The notes under the pieces were generated by a model, which had not been told where the DNA came from, did not search any database, and worked only from the letters and a program-made list of their open reading frames with translations. From Paramoeba atlantica (taxonomy: Eukaryota; Protista; Discosea): DNA of 64,000 nucleotides. Shown here piece after piece: positions 12,741 to 30,477 of the stretch. Numbering within the stretch: position 1 is the first letter of the stretch; every line of letters begins with the position of its first letter. A program made the position numbers and the translations under genes. The stretch covers positions 1-64,000 of the forward strand of contig CDRNVI010000026.1 of assembly GCA_977017575.1 (NCBI GenBank), written 5' to 3'.

Positions 12741-13654
12741 CTTCTAGGAAATTGGATGTTCAAGTAGATTTTTGTAGATATTCTTCGTAACGGAACCGTT
12801 TCGTAGGGTGTATGACTCAAGTGTAATTCTTTGTTGGTTCGATGGAATTATGATTACGGAGTTCAATTTATCCGTTGACTCCACTTTACCCGTAGACTTA
12901 AAATGTACACATGCTTATAATTCTGTACTTGTTTGTTTATATTGTAGAACACCTTTTAGTCATAATCTACCTTTGATTCCCTTTTAACAGCCTATAAATA
13001 CATGTATGATATTATGCCTGGTGCTCTGTTCCGTACCGTGTTTGTGTGTTCCATACCTTTTGATCACGGGTTCCGATAATTTTACAAAATAATAATAATA
13101 ACTTACAAATCTTTTTTTTTCGTTTCTTTCTACTGCAATTTTTGTTCGTTTCCTTCTACTGCATGGATGACAGTTCCGATTTGCGTCGCGGCAAGGTTAC
13201 CGCCTTGTTGCTACCCCCAGAGGAACTCCTTGAGCGTTTCATATCAGATGTGGAACCAAGATCAAGGCACCCCACTTGGCGCCTTGCTAAGAAGGGAGTC
13301 TTTGGGCATGTGAAAAGCGTATCGGTATGCACGTGGTATGGGGTGACTTGCGATGCGCAGCATCGTCTAAGAAGGATTCGATGGGATGACATGGGGCTCG
13401 AACGACAGGTACAATGGGAATTCCTACCCCAAACACTAACGGCTTGTAGTTTCCTTAGAAACAGACTTACGGGATCATTGTTACTTGATGCATTACCACC
13501 GCAGCTGACATACCTGCATGTATCGAGCAACCGATTTGGCGATGAGTTATCCTTGACTAATTTGCCGCCTACCACAGAGTCTCTTTGGTTCAATGACAAT
13601 CGCTTTGAAGGAAGCGTAGATCTTACCCATTTACCCCTTCGTCTCTGTGACTTG

Positions 13655-13692
13655 ATAAAGATACAGTTTCTGTACCTTGTTGGTACATTTTC
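13655..13692 (+). ncRNA. Spliced-leader exon (3' 28 nt) plus GT donor
   Basis: Matches the kinetoplastid SL core CAGTTTCTGTACTTTATTG|GTA; donor GT at 13683-13684. Confidence 0.8.
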
Positions 13693-14230
13693 CCTTTAGT
13701 TCATCTTTTCTTTCCCCGGCAACGGGCATAATCTTACTGTTTTATATGCCCGTTGCCGGCCGGCACTAAGGCCGAAACTGTCCCTCTTTCTCGGCGAAGT
13801 AGGGGACGCGCTTCCACGCCATCACCCCTCCCCGGCTCACTCCTTGAGTGGGTTTTCTTCCCTCCCCGGCTTTCTTCCCTTCGCGCCCTTTTATTCCCGG
13901 GGAGCCATGCGCCATGGTGGCCTCCCTTGAGGACCACTGGGCGTGGCTCTGCCTCGTCTTATCGCGAGGCAGCGGTCGGTTGCAGTGCGCCCCTCCGGCT
14001 GCGTAAAGAGGTGGTGAGTTGCCTGGACCACCTCTACCGACTGGGACCGAGTCGGTTGCAGTGCGCCCCTCCGGCTGCGTAAACAGAGGGCGAGTTGCCT
14101 GGACCCCCTCTACCGACCGAGTCCGTGTCGAACCCCCTTGGTGCGACATCCGTCAATACGGATTGTGCCGATGATATCGGCTGTCGCATCAAGGGCTGTA
14201 TCTCTGCGCCAACGAGCGCATGAACATCAA
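13655..14230 (+). mobile_element. Dispersed SL-RNA-gene-derived unit, copy 1
   Basis: Begins ATAAAGATACAGTTTCTGTACCTTGTTG|GTAC; collinear over its full length with the reverse complement of 27230-27809. Confidence 0.8.
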
Positions 14231-14561
14231 AAACTTGATTACAATGAGCTCTCCGGTGGAGTCGATCTCTCTTGTTTGCCCTACGAAATGAAAACTCTGA
14301 ATTTGGCCTTTAACAGGTTTACAGGACCACTAAATTTGCAGAAGACGCCTCCTTTGCTGGAATTCATTTACTGTCAAAGCAATTGTTTTTCGGACTTGAT
14401 AATGTTTGCTTCGATTCCCAAGGAATTAAAAGCGTTAACCATATACGACAACAAAAATCTTAAGGGCGAAATTAATTTTTCTATTCTCCCGAAAAATTTA
14501 TTTGCAGAGATCACTACTTCAGGAACGGATGTCAAGGTACTGTGATCATAAAAGTATGAGT

Positions 14562-15236
14562 AGTCACTCATACTGCGCGCTTCGCGTTGAAAACTAACTC
14601 CGCGTTTAACGAAGAGACTAAAAAAGAAAAATCGCCAAAACGTCATGAATAATCTACTTTTTTGGGGGAAAAAGCTCGATTTTTCGGCAAAAATTGCGAA
14701 ATTTTACCCCGAATTTTTGATGCCTTACCAGTACAGTGGGGGCAGGAGTCGAATCTGTCGACAAAAACGTCGTAGAATGGTGACTCTCCGAATATGGTTT
14801 AGGAGTCGATTTGGAAAAATATTCTTTTTACTTTTTCTTAGGTCAAAAAAAACTATTTTTTGGCTATCCCAAAAATTTCGGAATTTTTGACCTTGTCGGA
14901 CCTCGCCCGCGCGTACCAGGGGGGGGACCCCCAGGTGGGGGTATGGAAAGTCATCGCCGCGGCCTACTCTACCACTTCCCTGCGCTCGATTTCGAATATC
15001 AAGATTTTGAACTTTTCAAAAAACGACGTATGCCCCCCTTTGGACTCCCCCCCCATGGACCCCGCCATGGACCCCCCATTTTTTTCAATTCTTTTTTTTT
15101 CAGTTTTGGACCACCGGAGCCCCCTTTTATATTTTTTTCTTCTATTATATTACTGTGTTTCTCTTTATATTTTCACTGTTTTTGTTCACTTTTTTTTCAA
15201 TAATCGAGGGTAGAGCGGTAGTTATACAACCACCGC
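14562..15236 (+). repeat. Family A repeat copy (right arm of 5' hairpin through 3' hairpin)
   Basis: 14562-14630 matches ~105-173; the 3' ~200 bp match 780-978; the middle matches ~40010-40400. Confidence 0.85.
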
Positions 15237-15340
15237 GATAAGTGTCCCTAGGGTCCTTATTATACCCCGCCTCCTACCGCATCAGAGGCAGGTGCAGAAT
15301 TTACAGGACCGTAAATTTGGATATGGGAGGGGTCTAATAT

Positions 15341-15390
15341 GCGCAGCATGAGTGACTTCTAAGTTGAAAACAATCACCGCGCTTAACGAA
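15341..15390 (-). repeat. Inverted fragment of the family A 5' hairpin left arm
   Basis: GCGCAGCATGAGTGACTTCTAAGTTGAAAACAATCACCGCGCTTAACGAA is approximately the reverse complement of 72-122. Confidence 0.8.
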
Positions 15391-15711
15391 AAGCCGAAAT
15401 TATACCTAGGAGGTACAATAGGTGTCTCTAGGTATAATGACCCGGACGGTCGTTTAGTTTATTCTAATTTTAGTTTAACAAGTTTACGTGGGGCTTTTCC
15501 CTGAATTCTTAGAAAGTAACAGGGTCTTCCTATTTTTCCCCGTCTTGAACGTACATCTTTCTATTTATAGTTCATTTGTGTAAATTTTTCAGGAGCAAGA
15601 AAATAAAACCTTTTGGGCTCGTTTAATGTAGACACGAATTCACTTGTTGTGGAAAGTTACGCATTTTGTGTTTTCTCAAACAAATGCCCTTAGCTTTTTA
15701 TTCTTTCTTCC

Positions 15712-24969: not shown

Positions 24970-24985
24970 TTTCTGTACCTTGTTG
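24970..24985 (+). other. Last 16 nt of the SL exon fused to the retrotransposon 5' end
   Basis: TTTCTGTACCTTGTTG is identical to 13667-13682 but is followed by AATCC instead of the GT donor. Confidence 0.75.
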
Positions 24986-25031
24986 AATCCTTTTTCTTTT
25001 CTCTACCTCTACTCTTCTCTCCCCCCGATAC

Positions 25032-26564
25032 ATGCCCACGACACGACGTCGACGAGGCTACCGGGGGCGCAAGGATTCACCCGGTGGGCCCGATTCCCCA
25101 CCTACCTCGACCTCAGGGGGACGCTCTACCACCCCTCTCAGGCGAGGTTCTAGCCCCCACTTCTCCACCGAGACTGTGGGGCTACACCAGCTCTCTATCG
25201 AGGAGCTGAAGAAGGCGAGGCCGGACCTTGAAGTCCGTGCAAAGACCCCTGTCAAGTCCCGCGCGTGCGACTTCTGTGGCCTCCCCTTTGTGCCCGCCAG
25301 GCGGGATATGTGCTTTTGTGATGCGTGCATTTCCCTTCGAGCGCAGCACAGAAAAGACCTTCGCGCGCGTGCGAAGACGCAAACCCCCGGGATCCCTCCT
25401 CCCCTCTCTGCTTCTTCTCCTAGGTCCTCTCGACACCGGTCGGTAACCCGAAGACCCCCGCGCTCCATCTCTCCTCGGAGCCGCTCCCGGAACAGAGCTC
25501 GCACCCCTCAGGCGAATGCTCCTGCTCCGATCCTGAAGAAAGCGTCAAACGTCTCCTTTGCACCTTTCCCCCAGGCAGACCTCTCCTCTAAGCCCTTCTC
25601 CACCGTCACCCGCATGGGCGGTGGTGACACTGTGGCCCGAGACGAAATGGACAGCGACGGCCCGCCACCCGGTGAGCGGTCGTTACCCCTACCCACAATG
25701 GCACAGCAGTTCAAATCCATGGACGCTGTCCGCCTCAAGCTCCTTCCTGCCCGAACCGGCTCAAATCGCTTTTCCGCGGAGACAGGAAGATGCGCAGTCA
25801 CCTTATGGCTGGCTGTGACCCTCAGCGCCGAACACGACGTAACATCAATGATGGAGAAAGAGGCCCGTGAACGTCGGGCCCTTACACTCGAAGCCGTTTG
25901 GACGCTGCACGACACCCACAAGTCCATCGAGGAGCGAATCTACCTCATTAATGAAGGGTGTTTGGTTTGCTCCGAATGCGGCATTACGCAGCCGCATATT
26001 GTCGCCCTCCAGGCGCATCGCATCAAGGTGCACGGGCCGAAACGCCTAAGGGCTGCGTCACGGGCCCTGCTTCGGGAACACGCCCCGGAAGCGCTCAGGA
26101 TCAAGGCCGATCGCTTCTCCTCCTTCATGGCTCTATATGAGGAGTTCTGCACGATGGAGGCCCACCTCCAAAGGGCACAGGCGAGTGCGATGGCTGGCGG
26201 CCCACCCTGGCCCCAGCCCACTTTTCGTTCTCCCCCTCATCCCACACCTTTCCCCGGGATAGCGACGAAGCTAATCCCCTCGCAGGCTACACCTGCACCG
26301 CCAACCAATCCCCTGGTCGACTCTGTTTCAGAGCCCTTCAAGATCCTACTCGATCTCGGGCCGGAGCGGGCCGGATATGCCACTATCCCCTGCCCCCCGG
26401 ACTCCTCTTTCCAGCACAGTGGGGAACACTTTAGGGGTCCCTGGGGAAAATCTCCTCCTCAAAGACAGCGCTGGCGAAACCACCCCTATCACAGATCGGG
26501 AGGGCCTAGATCGCGCTCAACGAGTAGCGGTCAGCCTGTCCCTACCTCCGTACAACCCCCGTAA
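25032..26564 (+). CDS. Retrotransposon ORF1, basic, with zinc-finger motifs
   Basis: 510 aa; CDFC...CFCDAC and CSEC...H....H motifs; R/S-rich. Confidence 0.75.
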   Translation: MPTTRRRRGYRGRKDSPGGPDSPPTSTSGGRSTTPLRRGSSPHFSTETVGLHQLSIEELKKARPDLEVRAKTPVKSRACDFCGLPFVPARRDMCFCDACISLRAQHRKDLRARAKTQTPGIPPPLSASSPRSSRHRSVTRRPPRSISPRSRSRNRARTPQANAPAPILKKASNVSFAPFPQADLSSKPFSTVTRMGGGDTVARDEMDSDGPPPGERSLPLPTMAQQFKSMDAVRLKLLPARTGSNRFSAETGRCAVTLWLAVTLSAEHDVTSMMEKEARERRALTLEAVWTLHDTHKSIEERIYLINEGCLVCSECGITQPHIVALQAHRIKVHGPKRLRAASRALLREHAPEALRIKADRFSSFMALYEEFCTMEAHLQRAQASAMAGGPPWPQPTFRSPPHPTPFPGIATKLIPSQATPAPPTNPLVDSVSEPFKILLDLGPERAGYATIPCPPDSSFQHSGEHFRGPWGKSPPQRQRWRNHPYHRSGGPRSRSTSSGQPVPTSVQPP

Positions 26565-27352
26565 CAACGAGGCGGCCGTTATTTGGGTGTACGATGGATC
26601 CATGCACGGGTTCATTAACGCCCCCGGACTACAGGCGGCCCACAACATCCCGGCCGGTCTGAGTGAGATTCTCGGTATTCCCCCAGTGCTGACTGGAGCT
26701 TGGAAACCTCGTGAATACGAGGAGGGTGTGCTATGGTGTTTCCTCCCTACAGAAACCCTAGTCAGCGAAACGGGATGGACCACTCGGGTTGTCAAATGCA
26801 ATCTACGCAGGGGATGCATCGAGGCAAACCCTGGCCCCAGACACCAGAACCGAGGGTCGCTGGCCTCATCCGCCCCCCAGCCCCGGCAGGCACCGAGCGA
26901 GACTCCGAGTGCCCTCCTCCAGGAGCCCGACACCCCTTCCCCCAGCAGGGAAGGAACTATCATGGAAGGAATCGCGGCTGTGACCTCACCGCAACACCCT
27001 CCTCTCCATGCATCTTCCTCCCATGCTCCGCCTCCGTACTCCCACCGCGCAGGGCCGGACCCCCCCGACATGGCCCCCAGCGCCACGCCCCCTCATACCC
27101 AAGGCGCGGTCACTGAGCAGGGTAAAGTCACGCCTTCCCCGGACAGCCTAGCCCAGCTCCTCGATAGGGGCTCACTACGTAAACTGTACGCAGTCCAATG
27201 CCCCGCGTGGAAAGACTACATTAAGTCTATCTTTTGTTTGTTTATCATGCGCTCTTTGGCGCAGAGATAATCCTCTTAATGCGACGGCCGATATCATCGG
27301 CACATAATCCGCCCACAACGGATGTCGCCAAAGGGGGTTCGACACGGACTCG

Positions 27353-27495
27353 GTCGGTAGAGGGGGTCCAGGCAACTCGCCCTCTCTTTACGCAGCCGGA
27401 GGGGCGTACTGCAACCGACTCGGTCCCAGTCGGTAGAGGTGGTCCAGGCAACTCACCATCTCTTTACGCAGCCGGAGGGGCGCACTGCAACCGAC
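27353..27495. repeat. 76-bp tandem duplication inside the SL unit (also at ~13975-14120)
   Basis: GTCGGTAGAG..TCCAGGCAACTC..TCTTTACGCAGCCGGAGGGGCG..CTGCAACCGA starts at 27353 and 27429. Confidence 0.9.
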
Positions 27496-27771
27496 CGCTG
27501 CCTTGCGATAATGCGAGGCAGAGTCACGCCCAGTGGTCCTCAAGGGAGGCCACCATGGCGCATAGCTCCCGGGAAGAGACAGGCGCGAGAAGAAAAAAGC
27601 CGGGGAGGGAAGAAAACTCACTCAAGGAGTGAGCCGGGGAGGGGTGAAAAGTCGGAAGTACGTCCCCTACTTCCACGACAAAGAGGGACAGTCCCTGCTA
27701 GCCGTCAGCCGGAAACGGGCATTTAAAAGGAAAATGTATGCCCGTTTACGGGAAAAGAAAGGAAGGGCTAG

Positions 27772-27809
27772 CAAAATGTACCAACAAGGTACAGAAACTG
27801 TATCTTTAT
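27772..27809 (-). ncRNA. Spliced-leader exon (3' 28 nt) plus GT donor
   Basis: Same 28-nt exon block as 13655-13682; GT at 27781-27780. Confidence 0.8.
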
Positions 27810-30477
27810 AGCGACTTCTTTGTAGCGACTTCTTGGGGAAGTCGCAGGAAGGGAAGACCAAAATCGCCTGGGATCTTCTTCTCGGGGTTAAACGGTTCCT
27901 GTTTTTCCCTGAGGACAAGCTGTCCCAGAGGCAGTTGGCGAGGGAGCTACGGAAACGGGCTCACCTAGAGGGGTCCGAATCCATCGCTCCAAATCCCCTC
28001 CTCACCAACAGCTTCCCCCGTTCTGTTATCAAACGGGTTACCGAGCTGATCCGGGCGGGGGCTTTCTCGAGGGCGGCTAAAATTCTGGAAGCCCCCCTCG
28101 ACCCGCCGGCAAACCCGGCTACAGCGGGGGAACAGGTGAAACGCCTCCACCCTACGGGAGGTCCTTATAACACCCCCAAGTTCGTTTATGAAAAGGAATG
28201 TCATGGACCCCTCCCGTCGGCGGCAGACGTTGTCCGTAAGGCAACTAGCCTTGCGCCGCTTAGAGCGCCAGGCCCGTCCGGATGGACCAAAGAACTCCTG
28301 GTCCCCATCCTCCAGGAGGATGACCCGAGGGACGTGGTCACTTGGATCATCCAAGGGATCCTCACGAACTCCCTCCCTCCCACGATGAGGGATTTCCTCA
28401 CGGGAGCCAACCTCAAGCTCTTTAACAAGCCTGGGGCCCCTGTGGGACATCACTCCTCATACAGGCCCATTGCCATGGGGGAGGTCATCCTGAAGCTCGC
28501 GGGTCTTCTAGCCCTTGAACAGGTCAGAGACCACCTCCCTGCTGTGTTTCAGGGCCTCCAATTCGGAGCCCAATACACGCAAGGATGCGAGCACGTCGTG
28601 TATGAAGTGAGAGATCACTTCCGCGACAGACCCGATGAGGTGATCGTGGCGGTCGACCTGGAAAATGCTTTTAACAGCATTTCCCGCGCGGCCATTTTCC
28701 GAGCCTTGAAAAGGTACCCGAACCTTTCCCCTATGCTCGGGATCTCCCTTTTCGGGTACGGGACCCCTAGCAAGCTCCACCTGGGGGAGGGGATTGCCAT
28801 CCCTAGCTCCCGGGGGGTGAAACAAGGGGACCCGATGGCGCCCATCCTGTTTGCCTTAGGGATTCAGGGGGCCATCTCGGCCGTGGCGCCAAAATACTCT
28901 GGCTGCCTAAAGCTATGGGCATATCTGGATGATATAACCTTAGCCGCGGAGCCCGGGGTGTGCGTAAAGGCCCTTGGCTCCATGGAAGCGGAGATCAAGT
29001 TTTTGGGCTTAAAACTCAACTTAAAGCCTCAAGTGCATGGTGGCTACTCGGCACCCGGACTTGTACTCGGTCTTCTCGGGGAGCAGGATGCAACATGCTC
29101 CGGGGGGGTTCAAGCTTCTGGGGGCGTATATTGGCGCCACGGAAGCGTTTGAAGAGGAATGGGTCCTATCGAAGGTTCCCAAGGTCACAAACTTCTTGGG
29201 TAAGCTGAAGGACTTACCCAGGCAGTGCGCCCTTCCCCTTCTTCGCCTATGCGGGAGCCCCCGGTGGAACTACATAGTTCGTACGCATGAACCGGGGGTG
29301 ACCAAAAAGGCAAACCTTCAGGTAGACGCGGCCATCACCGCATGCTCCGAAACCTTAATCGGGGGGATGGGTGCAATAGGAACGACGCCGTTCGCAAACA
29401 AACTTTTTACGGCGGACTTCCTGGGCACCATCCCCTTCGAAGACAAGGCGGAGGACATGCAGGCCAAAGCCGTCAAGGCCTTACAAGGCCGACCCCCTGG
29501 CACCCCAGCCAGGGAGCAGCGACGCGCTTATGGGGCGGCGGCTATGGACAAGGCCCCGTCGGCCACGCATCTGGTCTGCATGCGACAGATCCAGAACACC
29601 CACTCCACCAAGTGGATGAACGCGTGGCCGAACAGGCCGGAGTACTACATGCGGGATCCCGAATGGGAGACCGCCGCTAGGCTCCGGTACATGGTGGCCC
29701 CCACCTCCGAACCTGAGATCCAATGTGTGTGTGGCGCAGCCCTCAAAAACGAGGATTTCTGTCTCCATGCCATGGATTGCAAAAAGGTTCGGGGGAAGAC
29801 ACAGGCCTCTCGTCACAAGGGGGTCAAGGAAACCTTCAGGAACCTACTGACCCAGTACGGATTCTGCCCGGACCTAGTCGAACCTAGGTTCGACAACGGC
29901 CGGGGACCGGACATCTGTTTCCTTTTGGGGCGGAAGCTCGTCCTCGTAAACGTGACGGTGGTGAACCCACTGGCACCGTCTTATGTGGACAAGGAGGCAG
30001 CAGACCCCTCCTTCACCGTGAGACAGGCCGAACGCCTCAAAAGGCGTACTCACGAAGAAATGGCGGGGGCCAGGGAGATGGATTTCTTCCCGCTGGCCTT
30101 CACCACTTACGGTGTCCCCGGCCCCGAGACCCTCCAGTTTCTTAACCTGGTCGCTCGGAAGGCCACCGGCGAGAAGAATGGTTGCCTCAGCCACCTCATC
30201 ATGGCAATCGGGGTAGCCATCCAAAAGGGGAACGCCCAGATAGCGCACGCCGCGGTACAAAATTGGTACCGACGGGGCGTGCGCTAAATGGGCCACGATG
30301 GAAAAAGGAAAAAAAAAATTTGATTGCTTGTTTTAAAATCATACACCCCCCCCAATGGACCTTCATGGTTCATGTATTGGGTACTATAGAGGCAATGCCG
30401 CGTTTCATACTTCTCCCCCCTTATTAATCGCAAAAAAAAAAGAAAAAAATTGACCAATTTTTTTGACCAAAAGGGTA

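Follow-up and report, generated by a model that had tools for sequence, protein, structure and literature searches.

A family of non-coding, strongly folded elements with a spliced-leader-derived head at a recurrent position in LRR genes

The 64,000-nt stretch of DNA analysed here (positions 1 to 64,000 of Paramoeba atlantica contig CDRNVI010000026.1, assembly GCA_977017575.1; hereafter the window) carries two members of a young, multi-copy, non-coding and strongly folded family of elements, one of which splits an LRR gene. The elements begin with a piece of spliced-leader (SL) exon, and the family shows one target sequence, one orientation and no or minimal change of the target. We consider them probably to be non-autonomous, SIDE-like retroposons that are copied from RNA by TPRT, with site-specific RLE (R2/CRE-type) enzymes acting in trans. 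An R2/CRE-type enzyme is favored because the insertions lack a target-site duplication (TSD), have a single orientation and lie at a fixed distance from a motif; because the 3′ ends are intact and carry a short A-rich tail and a covarying terminal hairpin; and because 5′ truncations occur along with ragged, stuttered 5′ junctions. The features of the locus are as follows.

13142..14545, plus strand: host LRR gene split by copy A, with an LRRNT-like N-terminus and plant-type LRRs (open frame restored on removal of the insert).
13655..14230, plus strand: copy A, a non-coding, full-length, 576-bp member of subfamily A (at least 40 genomic copies at 94–100% identity over nt 1–576; no long ORF; fold z-score −7.2).
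27230..27809, minus strand: copy B, a member of subfamily B with the 5′ junction stutter AGAAGTCGCT-ACAA-AGAAGTCGCT (97% identical B copies in L072 and L073).
24970..30447, plus strand: degenerate R2/CRE-like retrotransposon with a 16-nt SL tail, a 5′ UTR, ORFs with an RT domain and poly(A); copy B lies antisense inside it.

In the alignment, copies A and B are collinear from end to end, with ~88% identity over the element and unrelated flanks; the aligned span runs from ATAAAGATACAG... through GCGCATGA..AA.CAAA. Both copies start with ATAAAGATACAGTTTCTGTACCTTGTTG|GTAC and finish with GCGCATGA(A/T)(C/A)A(T/A)(C/A)AAA. Their 28-nt head corresponds to nt 11–38 of the true SL exon, AACTTTAACGATAAAGATACAGTTTCTGTACCTTGTTG, as read from the SL genes of loci L068 and L069, and is followed by GTA as in the SL gene. 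An earlier note on this DNA had already described collinear copies that open with 28 nt of SL exon and a splice donor, and both descriptions are confirmed. It had also stated that clean removal of the insert restores the LRR register. Joining 13142–13654 to 14231–14545 indeed yields a single open frame (...SVDLTHLPLRLCDLKLDYNELSGGVDL...) that stops at ~14545, reading through the junction also as ...FEGSVDLTHLPLRLCDLKLDYNELSGGVDLSCLP... and continuing to the stop; removal of copy A restores the open LRR frame, and therefore the insertion produced no target duplication. The sequence ACTTGA(T), present on both sides of copy A, was rejected as a TSD: it would break the LRR frame, and the occurrence of ACTTGA on both flanks is LRR self-similarity. 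The insertion was present in the DNA contigs of the sequencing runs of two samples, and no empty-site joint was seen in the DNA contigs of the same runs.

The mobility of the unit, likewise proposed in the earlier note, is borne out by the genome search. The organism's genome (45.7 Mb) contains at least 40 full-length copies at 94–100% identity, 71 exact heads of the form TAAAG..GGTACA (93 with a looser pattern) and 99 exact 3′-module motifs. A covariance model of the 3′ module (R1) gave at least 150 matches, some of them inside SL arrays. The 582 and 2872 "candidates" returned by the searches are seeds, not copies; judged from the sequence matches, the family may number roughly 100–150 members. 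There is no ORF across the 576 bp, and the element encodes neither RT nor an RLE endonuclease. Its parts are listed here for copy A.

13655..13682, plus strand: SL-derived head, SL exon nt 11–38 (exact match to the SL-gene exon of L068 and L069).
13657..13670, plus strand: head nt 3–16, AAAGATACAGTTTC, the predicted 5′ strand of the helix closing the 5′ domain (RNAalifold consensus of subfamilies A, B and C).
13683..13699, plus strand: 17-nt spacer GTACATTTTCCCTTTAG (GT, pyrimidines, AG), with only GTA common to the SL intron; missing in subfamily A-d17.
13774..13789, plus strand: antisense-SL box GAAACTGTCCCTCTTT, predicted by the consensus fold to pair with the head; also found in the copy inside the SL-array spacer.
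13655..13974, plus strand: conserved 5′ module, common to A, B, C and D (alignments; compensatory pairs at alignment columns 47/111, 60/109 and 66/101).
13975..14128, plus strand: variable centre, here two tandem hairpin units of ~77 nt (alignments; elsewhere in the family, a single unit, four units or unrelated sequence).
14134..14230, plus strand: conserved 3′ module of three hairpins and a short A-rich tail (compensatory changes; model R1, at least 150 copies).

The family divides into at least the subfamilies A (576 bp), A-d17, B (580 bp), C (the second unit in L008) and D (L071), which all combine a common 5′ module of ~310 nt and a 3′ module of ~100 nt around the variable centre. The centre consists of one (L035, L037), two or four (L072) copies of the 77-nt hairpin unit, or of unrelated sequence; the form with four central repeats is a 726-bp version of subfamily B. 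The predicted RNA is highly structured (fold z-score −7.2), and consensus folding found compensatory pairs in both modules. Head nt 3–16 (AAAGATACAGTTTC) pair in the consensus fold with the antisense-SL box GAAACTGTCCCTCTTT at nt 120–135 and so close the first domain; the pairs of this helix are kept in subfamilies B and C through U-A to U-G changes. In the terminal hairpin of the 3′ module, GCGC/GCGC is replaced by GCAC/GTGC in subfamily D, a compensatory change. The 3′ module is the likely recognition site of the reverse transcriptase. In at least nine A-d17 copies the exon end is joined directly to TTCATC (...TTG|TTCATC), with precisely the 17-nt GTACATTTTCCCTTTAG missing, and their head-start mode is unchanged. 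The hairpin formed there is therefore not needed for mobility or for formation of the 5′ end. This GT...pyrimidine...AG deletion may reflect a splicing event or slippage at the GTACC/GGTAC palindrome.

Among the 93 heads, the start falls on A11 in 35 copies, on G10 and on T12 in 14 each, on A13 in 8, further in in 11, and at nt 8–9 or still closer to the exon start in 11. The head extends to nt 7 or beyond in five or more copies, and to nt 3 in L029. Heads extending to exon nt 3–8 are found in ~10% of copies, which shows that the SL part of some templates was longer. The 5′ ends cluster sharply around exon nt 11 but are not strictly fixed, so that the fixed ends described in the earlier note stand as defined ends only. 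In 7 of 30 junctions, the final bases of the target and the opening bases of the head are mixed in short reiterations, and each reiterated head piece begins at ATAAAG (L005, L023, L015, L008, L009, L016 and copy B). Such restarts resemble template jumps at an RNA end, which would place the usual 5′ end of the RNA at nt 11. The form of the R2 5′ junction depends on where the RNA ends (PMC3774820). The modal 5′ end lies 2 nt ahead of the first pair of the head helix, and trimming back to a stable structure would fit this predicted geometry. For the element RNA as a whole, its 5′ end, cap and strand are what we infer.

Insertion sites show a strong preference. Fourteen to sixteen of the 29 independent insertions are in LRR genes, always in sense and at one and the same codon position, ...(V)DL..LP..L..L |.L..N.LSG.... 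The motif GAY-N(6-12)-YTNCCN, corresponding to the "DL..LP" codons, is found upstream in 12 of the 29 sites; its distance to the junction is 18–23 nt in seven sites, and that distance plus the length of a junction filler in five. Half of the sites have no clear motif. For copy A, the target reads as follows.

13619..13654, plus strand: target motif GAT-N9-TTACCC with 18 nt to the junction, codons D-L-T-H-L-P-L-R-L-C-D-L (same motif and spacing in 12 of 29 sites).

The motif and its spacing are enriched: in a control that drew random positions from these flanks, themselves rich in LRRs, both motifs came up on average in 0.94 of 29 sites and never in more than six over 2000 trials, against the seven observed (p < 0.0005). 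The same motif and spacing were hit outside LRR sequence, in a conserved ..ARLP.K.GGL stretch of an R2-like ORF (L021), and the motif was also hit as an out-of-frame CTTCCC in another RLE element (L073). The targeting signal is therefore DNA, not protein. Occupied sites are used again (L006, L008, L071): a new full-length copy adjoins the LRR flank, and the older ones, often 5′-truncated, are pushed downstream, which fits recognition of the upstream side only. At L071 (G000:C69:41800-43250, minus strand), four members stand head to tail at one LRR target site, in the order D (full-length), C, A and another, the last three 5′-truncated.

The earlier note had taken the insert for an SL gene unit; beyond the head this does not hold. 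A pattern search located tandem SL gene arrays on contigs C97, C107, C11 and C74, in which the gene reads ...ttgtt|AACTTTAACGATAAAGATACAGTTTCTGTACCTTGTTG|GTATGAGAAGCTTCGAACTC... (L068, L069). The array unit is ~2.56 kb long with one 5S rRNA gene per unit on the other strand, and the SL-5S arrays are bodonid-type; they were seen at L068:2300-8200 (G000:C97) and L069 (G000:C11:1-7500). On C11, SL gene variants with GTC for GTA lie 297 bp from a normal copy. The SL gene and the element share exactly 31 nt, exon nt 11–38 plus GTA, and then diverge. The SL intron (GTATGAGAAGC... / GTATGAGAAGCTTCG...) is unrelated to the element and differs from nt 4 on. In the natural tandem in L008, where the 3′ end of one element meets the 5′ end of the next (ACATCAAAAGATACAG), the joint is ...ACATCAAAA+ATAAAG, and the exon is not rebuilt. 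Every SL-array spacer holds a diverged, internally deleted relative of the element (L068:2527-2835), on the strand opposite to the SL gene and without a head, with (CT)n just before it; from its sequence we read this relative as a putative old insertion that was homogenised with the array. A pattern search of the assembly for SL genes interrupted in the first 20 nt after AACG found none, and only two point variants.

SL heads are not peculiar to this family. The SL-like 32-mer AACGATAAAG...TTG has 554 dispersed occurrences in the genome, and the 30 sampled loci show it at the head of many different units, built as (A)n-CTTTAACG...TTG-AATTATTTTC...-ATG-ORF. The degenerate RT element at 24970–30447 is among the SL-headed units, and SL heads are a general mark of retroelements in this genome. 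The head of that element is only the last 16 nt of the SL, and its 3′ end is ...CATACTTCTCCCCCCTTATTAATCGC(A)n. At many loci the same 3′ terminus is immediately followed by the SL head of another element, either because the two are arranged head to tail or because elements landed in A-runs. An isolated SL copy of ~39 nt (TGACTTTAACG...TTG) is found in a 5.1-kb tandem unit with a period of 5093 bp (L038-L041, L066; G000:C1:9752..25061), with the same 34 nt, ACTTTTCTTATTTGTATTTCGCACGAATAAAAGT, on both sides.

These observations can be combined into a model of retroposition. The enzyme would bind the upstream motif and nick at a fixed distance from it, and the 3′ terminal hairpins would serve as its RNA handle. 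The working RNA would end at SL exon nt 11 (±1), 2 nt before the helix of head and antisense-SL box. The head would originally derive from an SL-carrying RNA, like the heads of many SL-headed retrotransposons of the genome, and would now be a structural part of the element and no longer a piece of an SL gene. One feature counts against an origin of the head from mature mRNA: the GTA after the exon, matching the SL intron, would then be only a 1-in-64 coincidence.

The genome contains very many RT elements, SL-headed LINE-type elements abound, and at least some RT elements have a CCHC/RHN/PD..D endonuclease signature after the RT domain (read by eye in the ORF at 2066–3031 of L021). The 1179-aa ORF of an RLE-type element in L073 (G000:C19) shows a 2A-like GGIESNPGP motif upstream of the RT domain, at L073:1180-1260. 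A 3′ module shared with a retrotransposon was not found in the window element, L011, L021 or L073. During the hunt for a partner LINE, family copies, at least 150 of them, saturated the covariance-model search, and three findings were rejected as partners: the tandem 3′-module hits on C65 are a 5.2-kb junk repeat with a 5′-truncated copy (L070), the hit on C19 belongs to a subfamily-B copy lodged in the ORF of an RLE element, the 3′ end of which is unrelated (L073), and the hit in L064 is an antisense fragment in a repeat mosaic. The earlier note's alternative proposal, a non-autonomous element mobilised by CRE machinery, is thus sustained in outline, with an R2/CRE-type enzyme as the best candidate; the target is an LRR-codon motif, and the four RT elements that were read include no partner.

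A rather unlikely extension of the model is that the SL head is itself a working part of the RNA. The boundary between nt 10 and 11 would then mark a processing step that frees the RNA from LRR co-transcripts, by either self-cleavage or trimming back to the helix, or would reflect descent from a retargeted SL-gene-homing lineage. If true, the family would be a SINE-like class without precedent, headed by a spliced leader and homing to a codon motif. Rfam searches of the whole window at the gathering threshold and of the element at E ≤ 10 gave noise only; SL RNA, ribozyme, tRNA and 5S families were all without a match. A nested fold of the HDV-like type (P1 3-8/49-54, P2 9-16/120-127, P3 17-22/28-33, P4 62-105) was rejected: it has a 15-nt P3–P1′ linker and no P1.1, and its P3 strand is missing in the mobile A-d17 subfamily.

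The head boundary could also be a fossil, left when an SL-gene-specific, CRE/SLACS-like lineage was retargeted to LRR codons and kept the captured downstream flank (nt 11–38 plus GTA). In an alignment with the T. brucei SL sequence that is anchored on the conserved CAGTTTCTGTAC core, the boundary falls at the same position as the trypanosomatid insertion site (PMC5814959); the three intron bases after the exon and the related sequence in the SL-array spacer point the same way. However, none of the SL genes in the assembly is occupied, the ~10% of heads extending upstream to nt 3–8 could not stem from a captured downstream flank, and SL heads are general among unrelated elements of the genome, all of which leaves such a descent unlikely. 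The link that the earlier note drew to the SLACS/CZAR/CRE cut site is accordingly positional only: 28 nt remain in both cases, but no SL gene is interrupted there.

Movement at the DNA level, as a Helitron-like or single-strand transposon without TSD, would account for the missing duplication, the hairpins near the 3′ end and the orientation-specific insertion. It is nonetheless very improbable, given termini of the form (A)TAAAG...ATCAAAA, not TC...CTRR, ragged 5′ ends, 5′-truncated copies with an intact 3′ end (L006, L070, L071), stutters that mix target and head pieces, and an A-rich tail that varies from 2 to 8 A. An introner-like insert, spliced from LRR mRNAs and found in sense orientation only through selection and not targeting, is harder still to credit. 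Such an origin would fit the sense orientation of all LRR copies, the SL donor TTG|GTA in the head and the lack of the GT...AG 17-mer in one subfamily; yet the 3′ end has no acceptor, splicing from the head donor would leave 28 nt in the mRNA, the motif spacing recurs at out-of-frame and non-LRR sites (L073, L021), and pile-ups and truncated copies indicate targeting over selection. Least tenable is the earlier note's first proposal, a circularly permuted, unit-length SL gene repeat freed by retrotransposon endonuclease cuts in neighbouring repeats and captured elsewhere: the 28 nt of exon left by the head start, as at the SLACS/CZAR site (PMC5814959), the GTA after the exon and the diverged element piece in the array spacer speak for it, but joining the 3′ end to the 5′ end recreates neither the exon nor the array period, which is 2.56 kb with 5S rRNA and not 0.58 kb, and the model is therefore refuted, the more so as the intron differs from nt 4 on, the spacer copy is headless and in opposite orientation, and no SL gene is interrupted within 20 nt after AACG. 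With it fall the striking claims of the note: there is no excised, permuted SL gene, and no circles are implied.

Returning to retroposition by an R2/CRE-type enzyme, the closest described case is that of the R2 SIDEs, non-autonomous R2 derivatives that are short and internally deleted (Eickbush and Eickbush 2012, PMC3414825). These too are non-coding, with conserved 5′ and 3′ RNA modules and a middle that is lost or replaced, and they insert at the same site and in the same orientation in a repeated host gene, without TSD and with variable 5′ junctions. They differ in their rDNA target, which is replaced here by a stretch of LRR-family codons, and in lacking the SL-derived head; conversely, an HDV-like ribozyme was not detected in the present element (Rfam, E ≤ 10). 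SLACS and CZAR insert between SL exon nt 11 and 12, leaving 28 nt (PMC5814959). Along with CRE1-2 (PMC5814959, PMC12278014) and NeSL-1, they share with our element the world of RLE-type, site-specific retrotransposons of SL-trans-splicing organisms, and SLACS/CZAR/CRE also share the same SL exon position with 28 nt remaining. In contrast to the present family, which is non-coding and found in LRR genes, SLACS/CZAR/CRE are autonomous and reside inside SL genes, which are unoccupied here. In Bodo saltans, the CRE, INGI, TATE and VIPER clades have been reported (PMC12278014).

Dinoflagellate retrogenes carry DinoSL relics at their 5′ end (PMC5585692, PMC6050394). There, too, a DNA copy of the SL marks passage through an SL-bearing RNA, whereas the SL piece studied here forms the head of a mobile element, has mostly been shortened to nt 11 and belongs to a conserved RNA helix. 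The kinetoplastid RIME/NARTc/SIDER elements (PMC4035085) are non-autonomous partners of LINEs with a functional 5′ RNA module, as our element would be; theirs is Pr77 with an HDV-like ribozyme, and they have a poly(A) tail, a 12-bp TSD and dispersed insertion. The present element is set apart from Pr77-type retroposons by the absence of a TSD, a tail of 2–8 A and the SL-derived 5′ end. Our element contains no Pol III-type head or A/B boxes of the kind expected of a classical SINE, and has no Rfam match. Some SINEs have heads derived from small RNAs, namely tRNA, 7SL, 5S or snRNA ("SINEU"). Such SINEs resemble the element in being short, non-coding and LINE-dependent and in taking the head from an abundant small RNA, and differ from it in that its head is 28 nt of SL exon and its insertion is site-specific.

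A literature search found no paper on this SL sequence or on SL-headed, LRR-homing elements, and a scan of metagenomes gave no match to the head sequence. The family thus presents a type of retroposon head for which we found no description, with 28 nt of SL built into the element's own predicted RNA fold. To our knowledge, almost all known targets of site-specific R2-type retroelements are rRNA, SL, snRNA or simple-repeat sequences; the DNA motif to which this family homes codes for a conserved segment in a large family of protein-coding LRR genes. LRR genes are broken repeatedly at the same codon and copies stack there, which amounts to a directed mutational pressure. The proteins exposed to it belong to a free-living, kinetoplastid-type protist and probably act at the cell surface or as receptors. 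R2-like enzymes are now being explored for gene insertion, and the family offers a natural pair of target site and RNA handle for enzymes of this kind.

Other repeats adjoin the elements at several places. Just past the LRR stop, positions 14546–15400 of the window contain a different, high-copy repeat at which contig depth spikes to thousands; from its apparently inverted ends (…agtcactcatactgcgcgcttcgcgttgaaaac… / …gcgcagcatgagtgacttctaagttgaaaac…), it is probably a DNA transposon or MITE. The 5.2-kb tandem repeat of L070 (G000:C65:1150-6500) is composed of MITE-like inverted repeats and a (AGGAAGAAAG)n tract, and includes a 5′-truncated, 112-nt element tail; the different unit that comes next opens with a 16-nt SL tail. 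In L064, an antisense element fragment lies in a mosaic of repeats, beside a tRNA-like stretch at L064:930-1010 (…agtccagttggtaaagg…ggttcggttcccgac…) that may be a tRNA-derived SINE.
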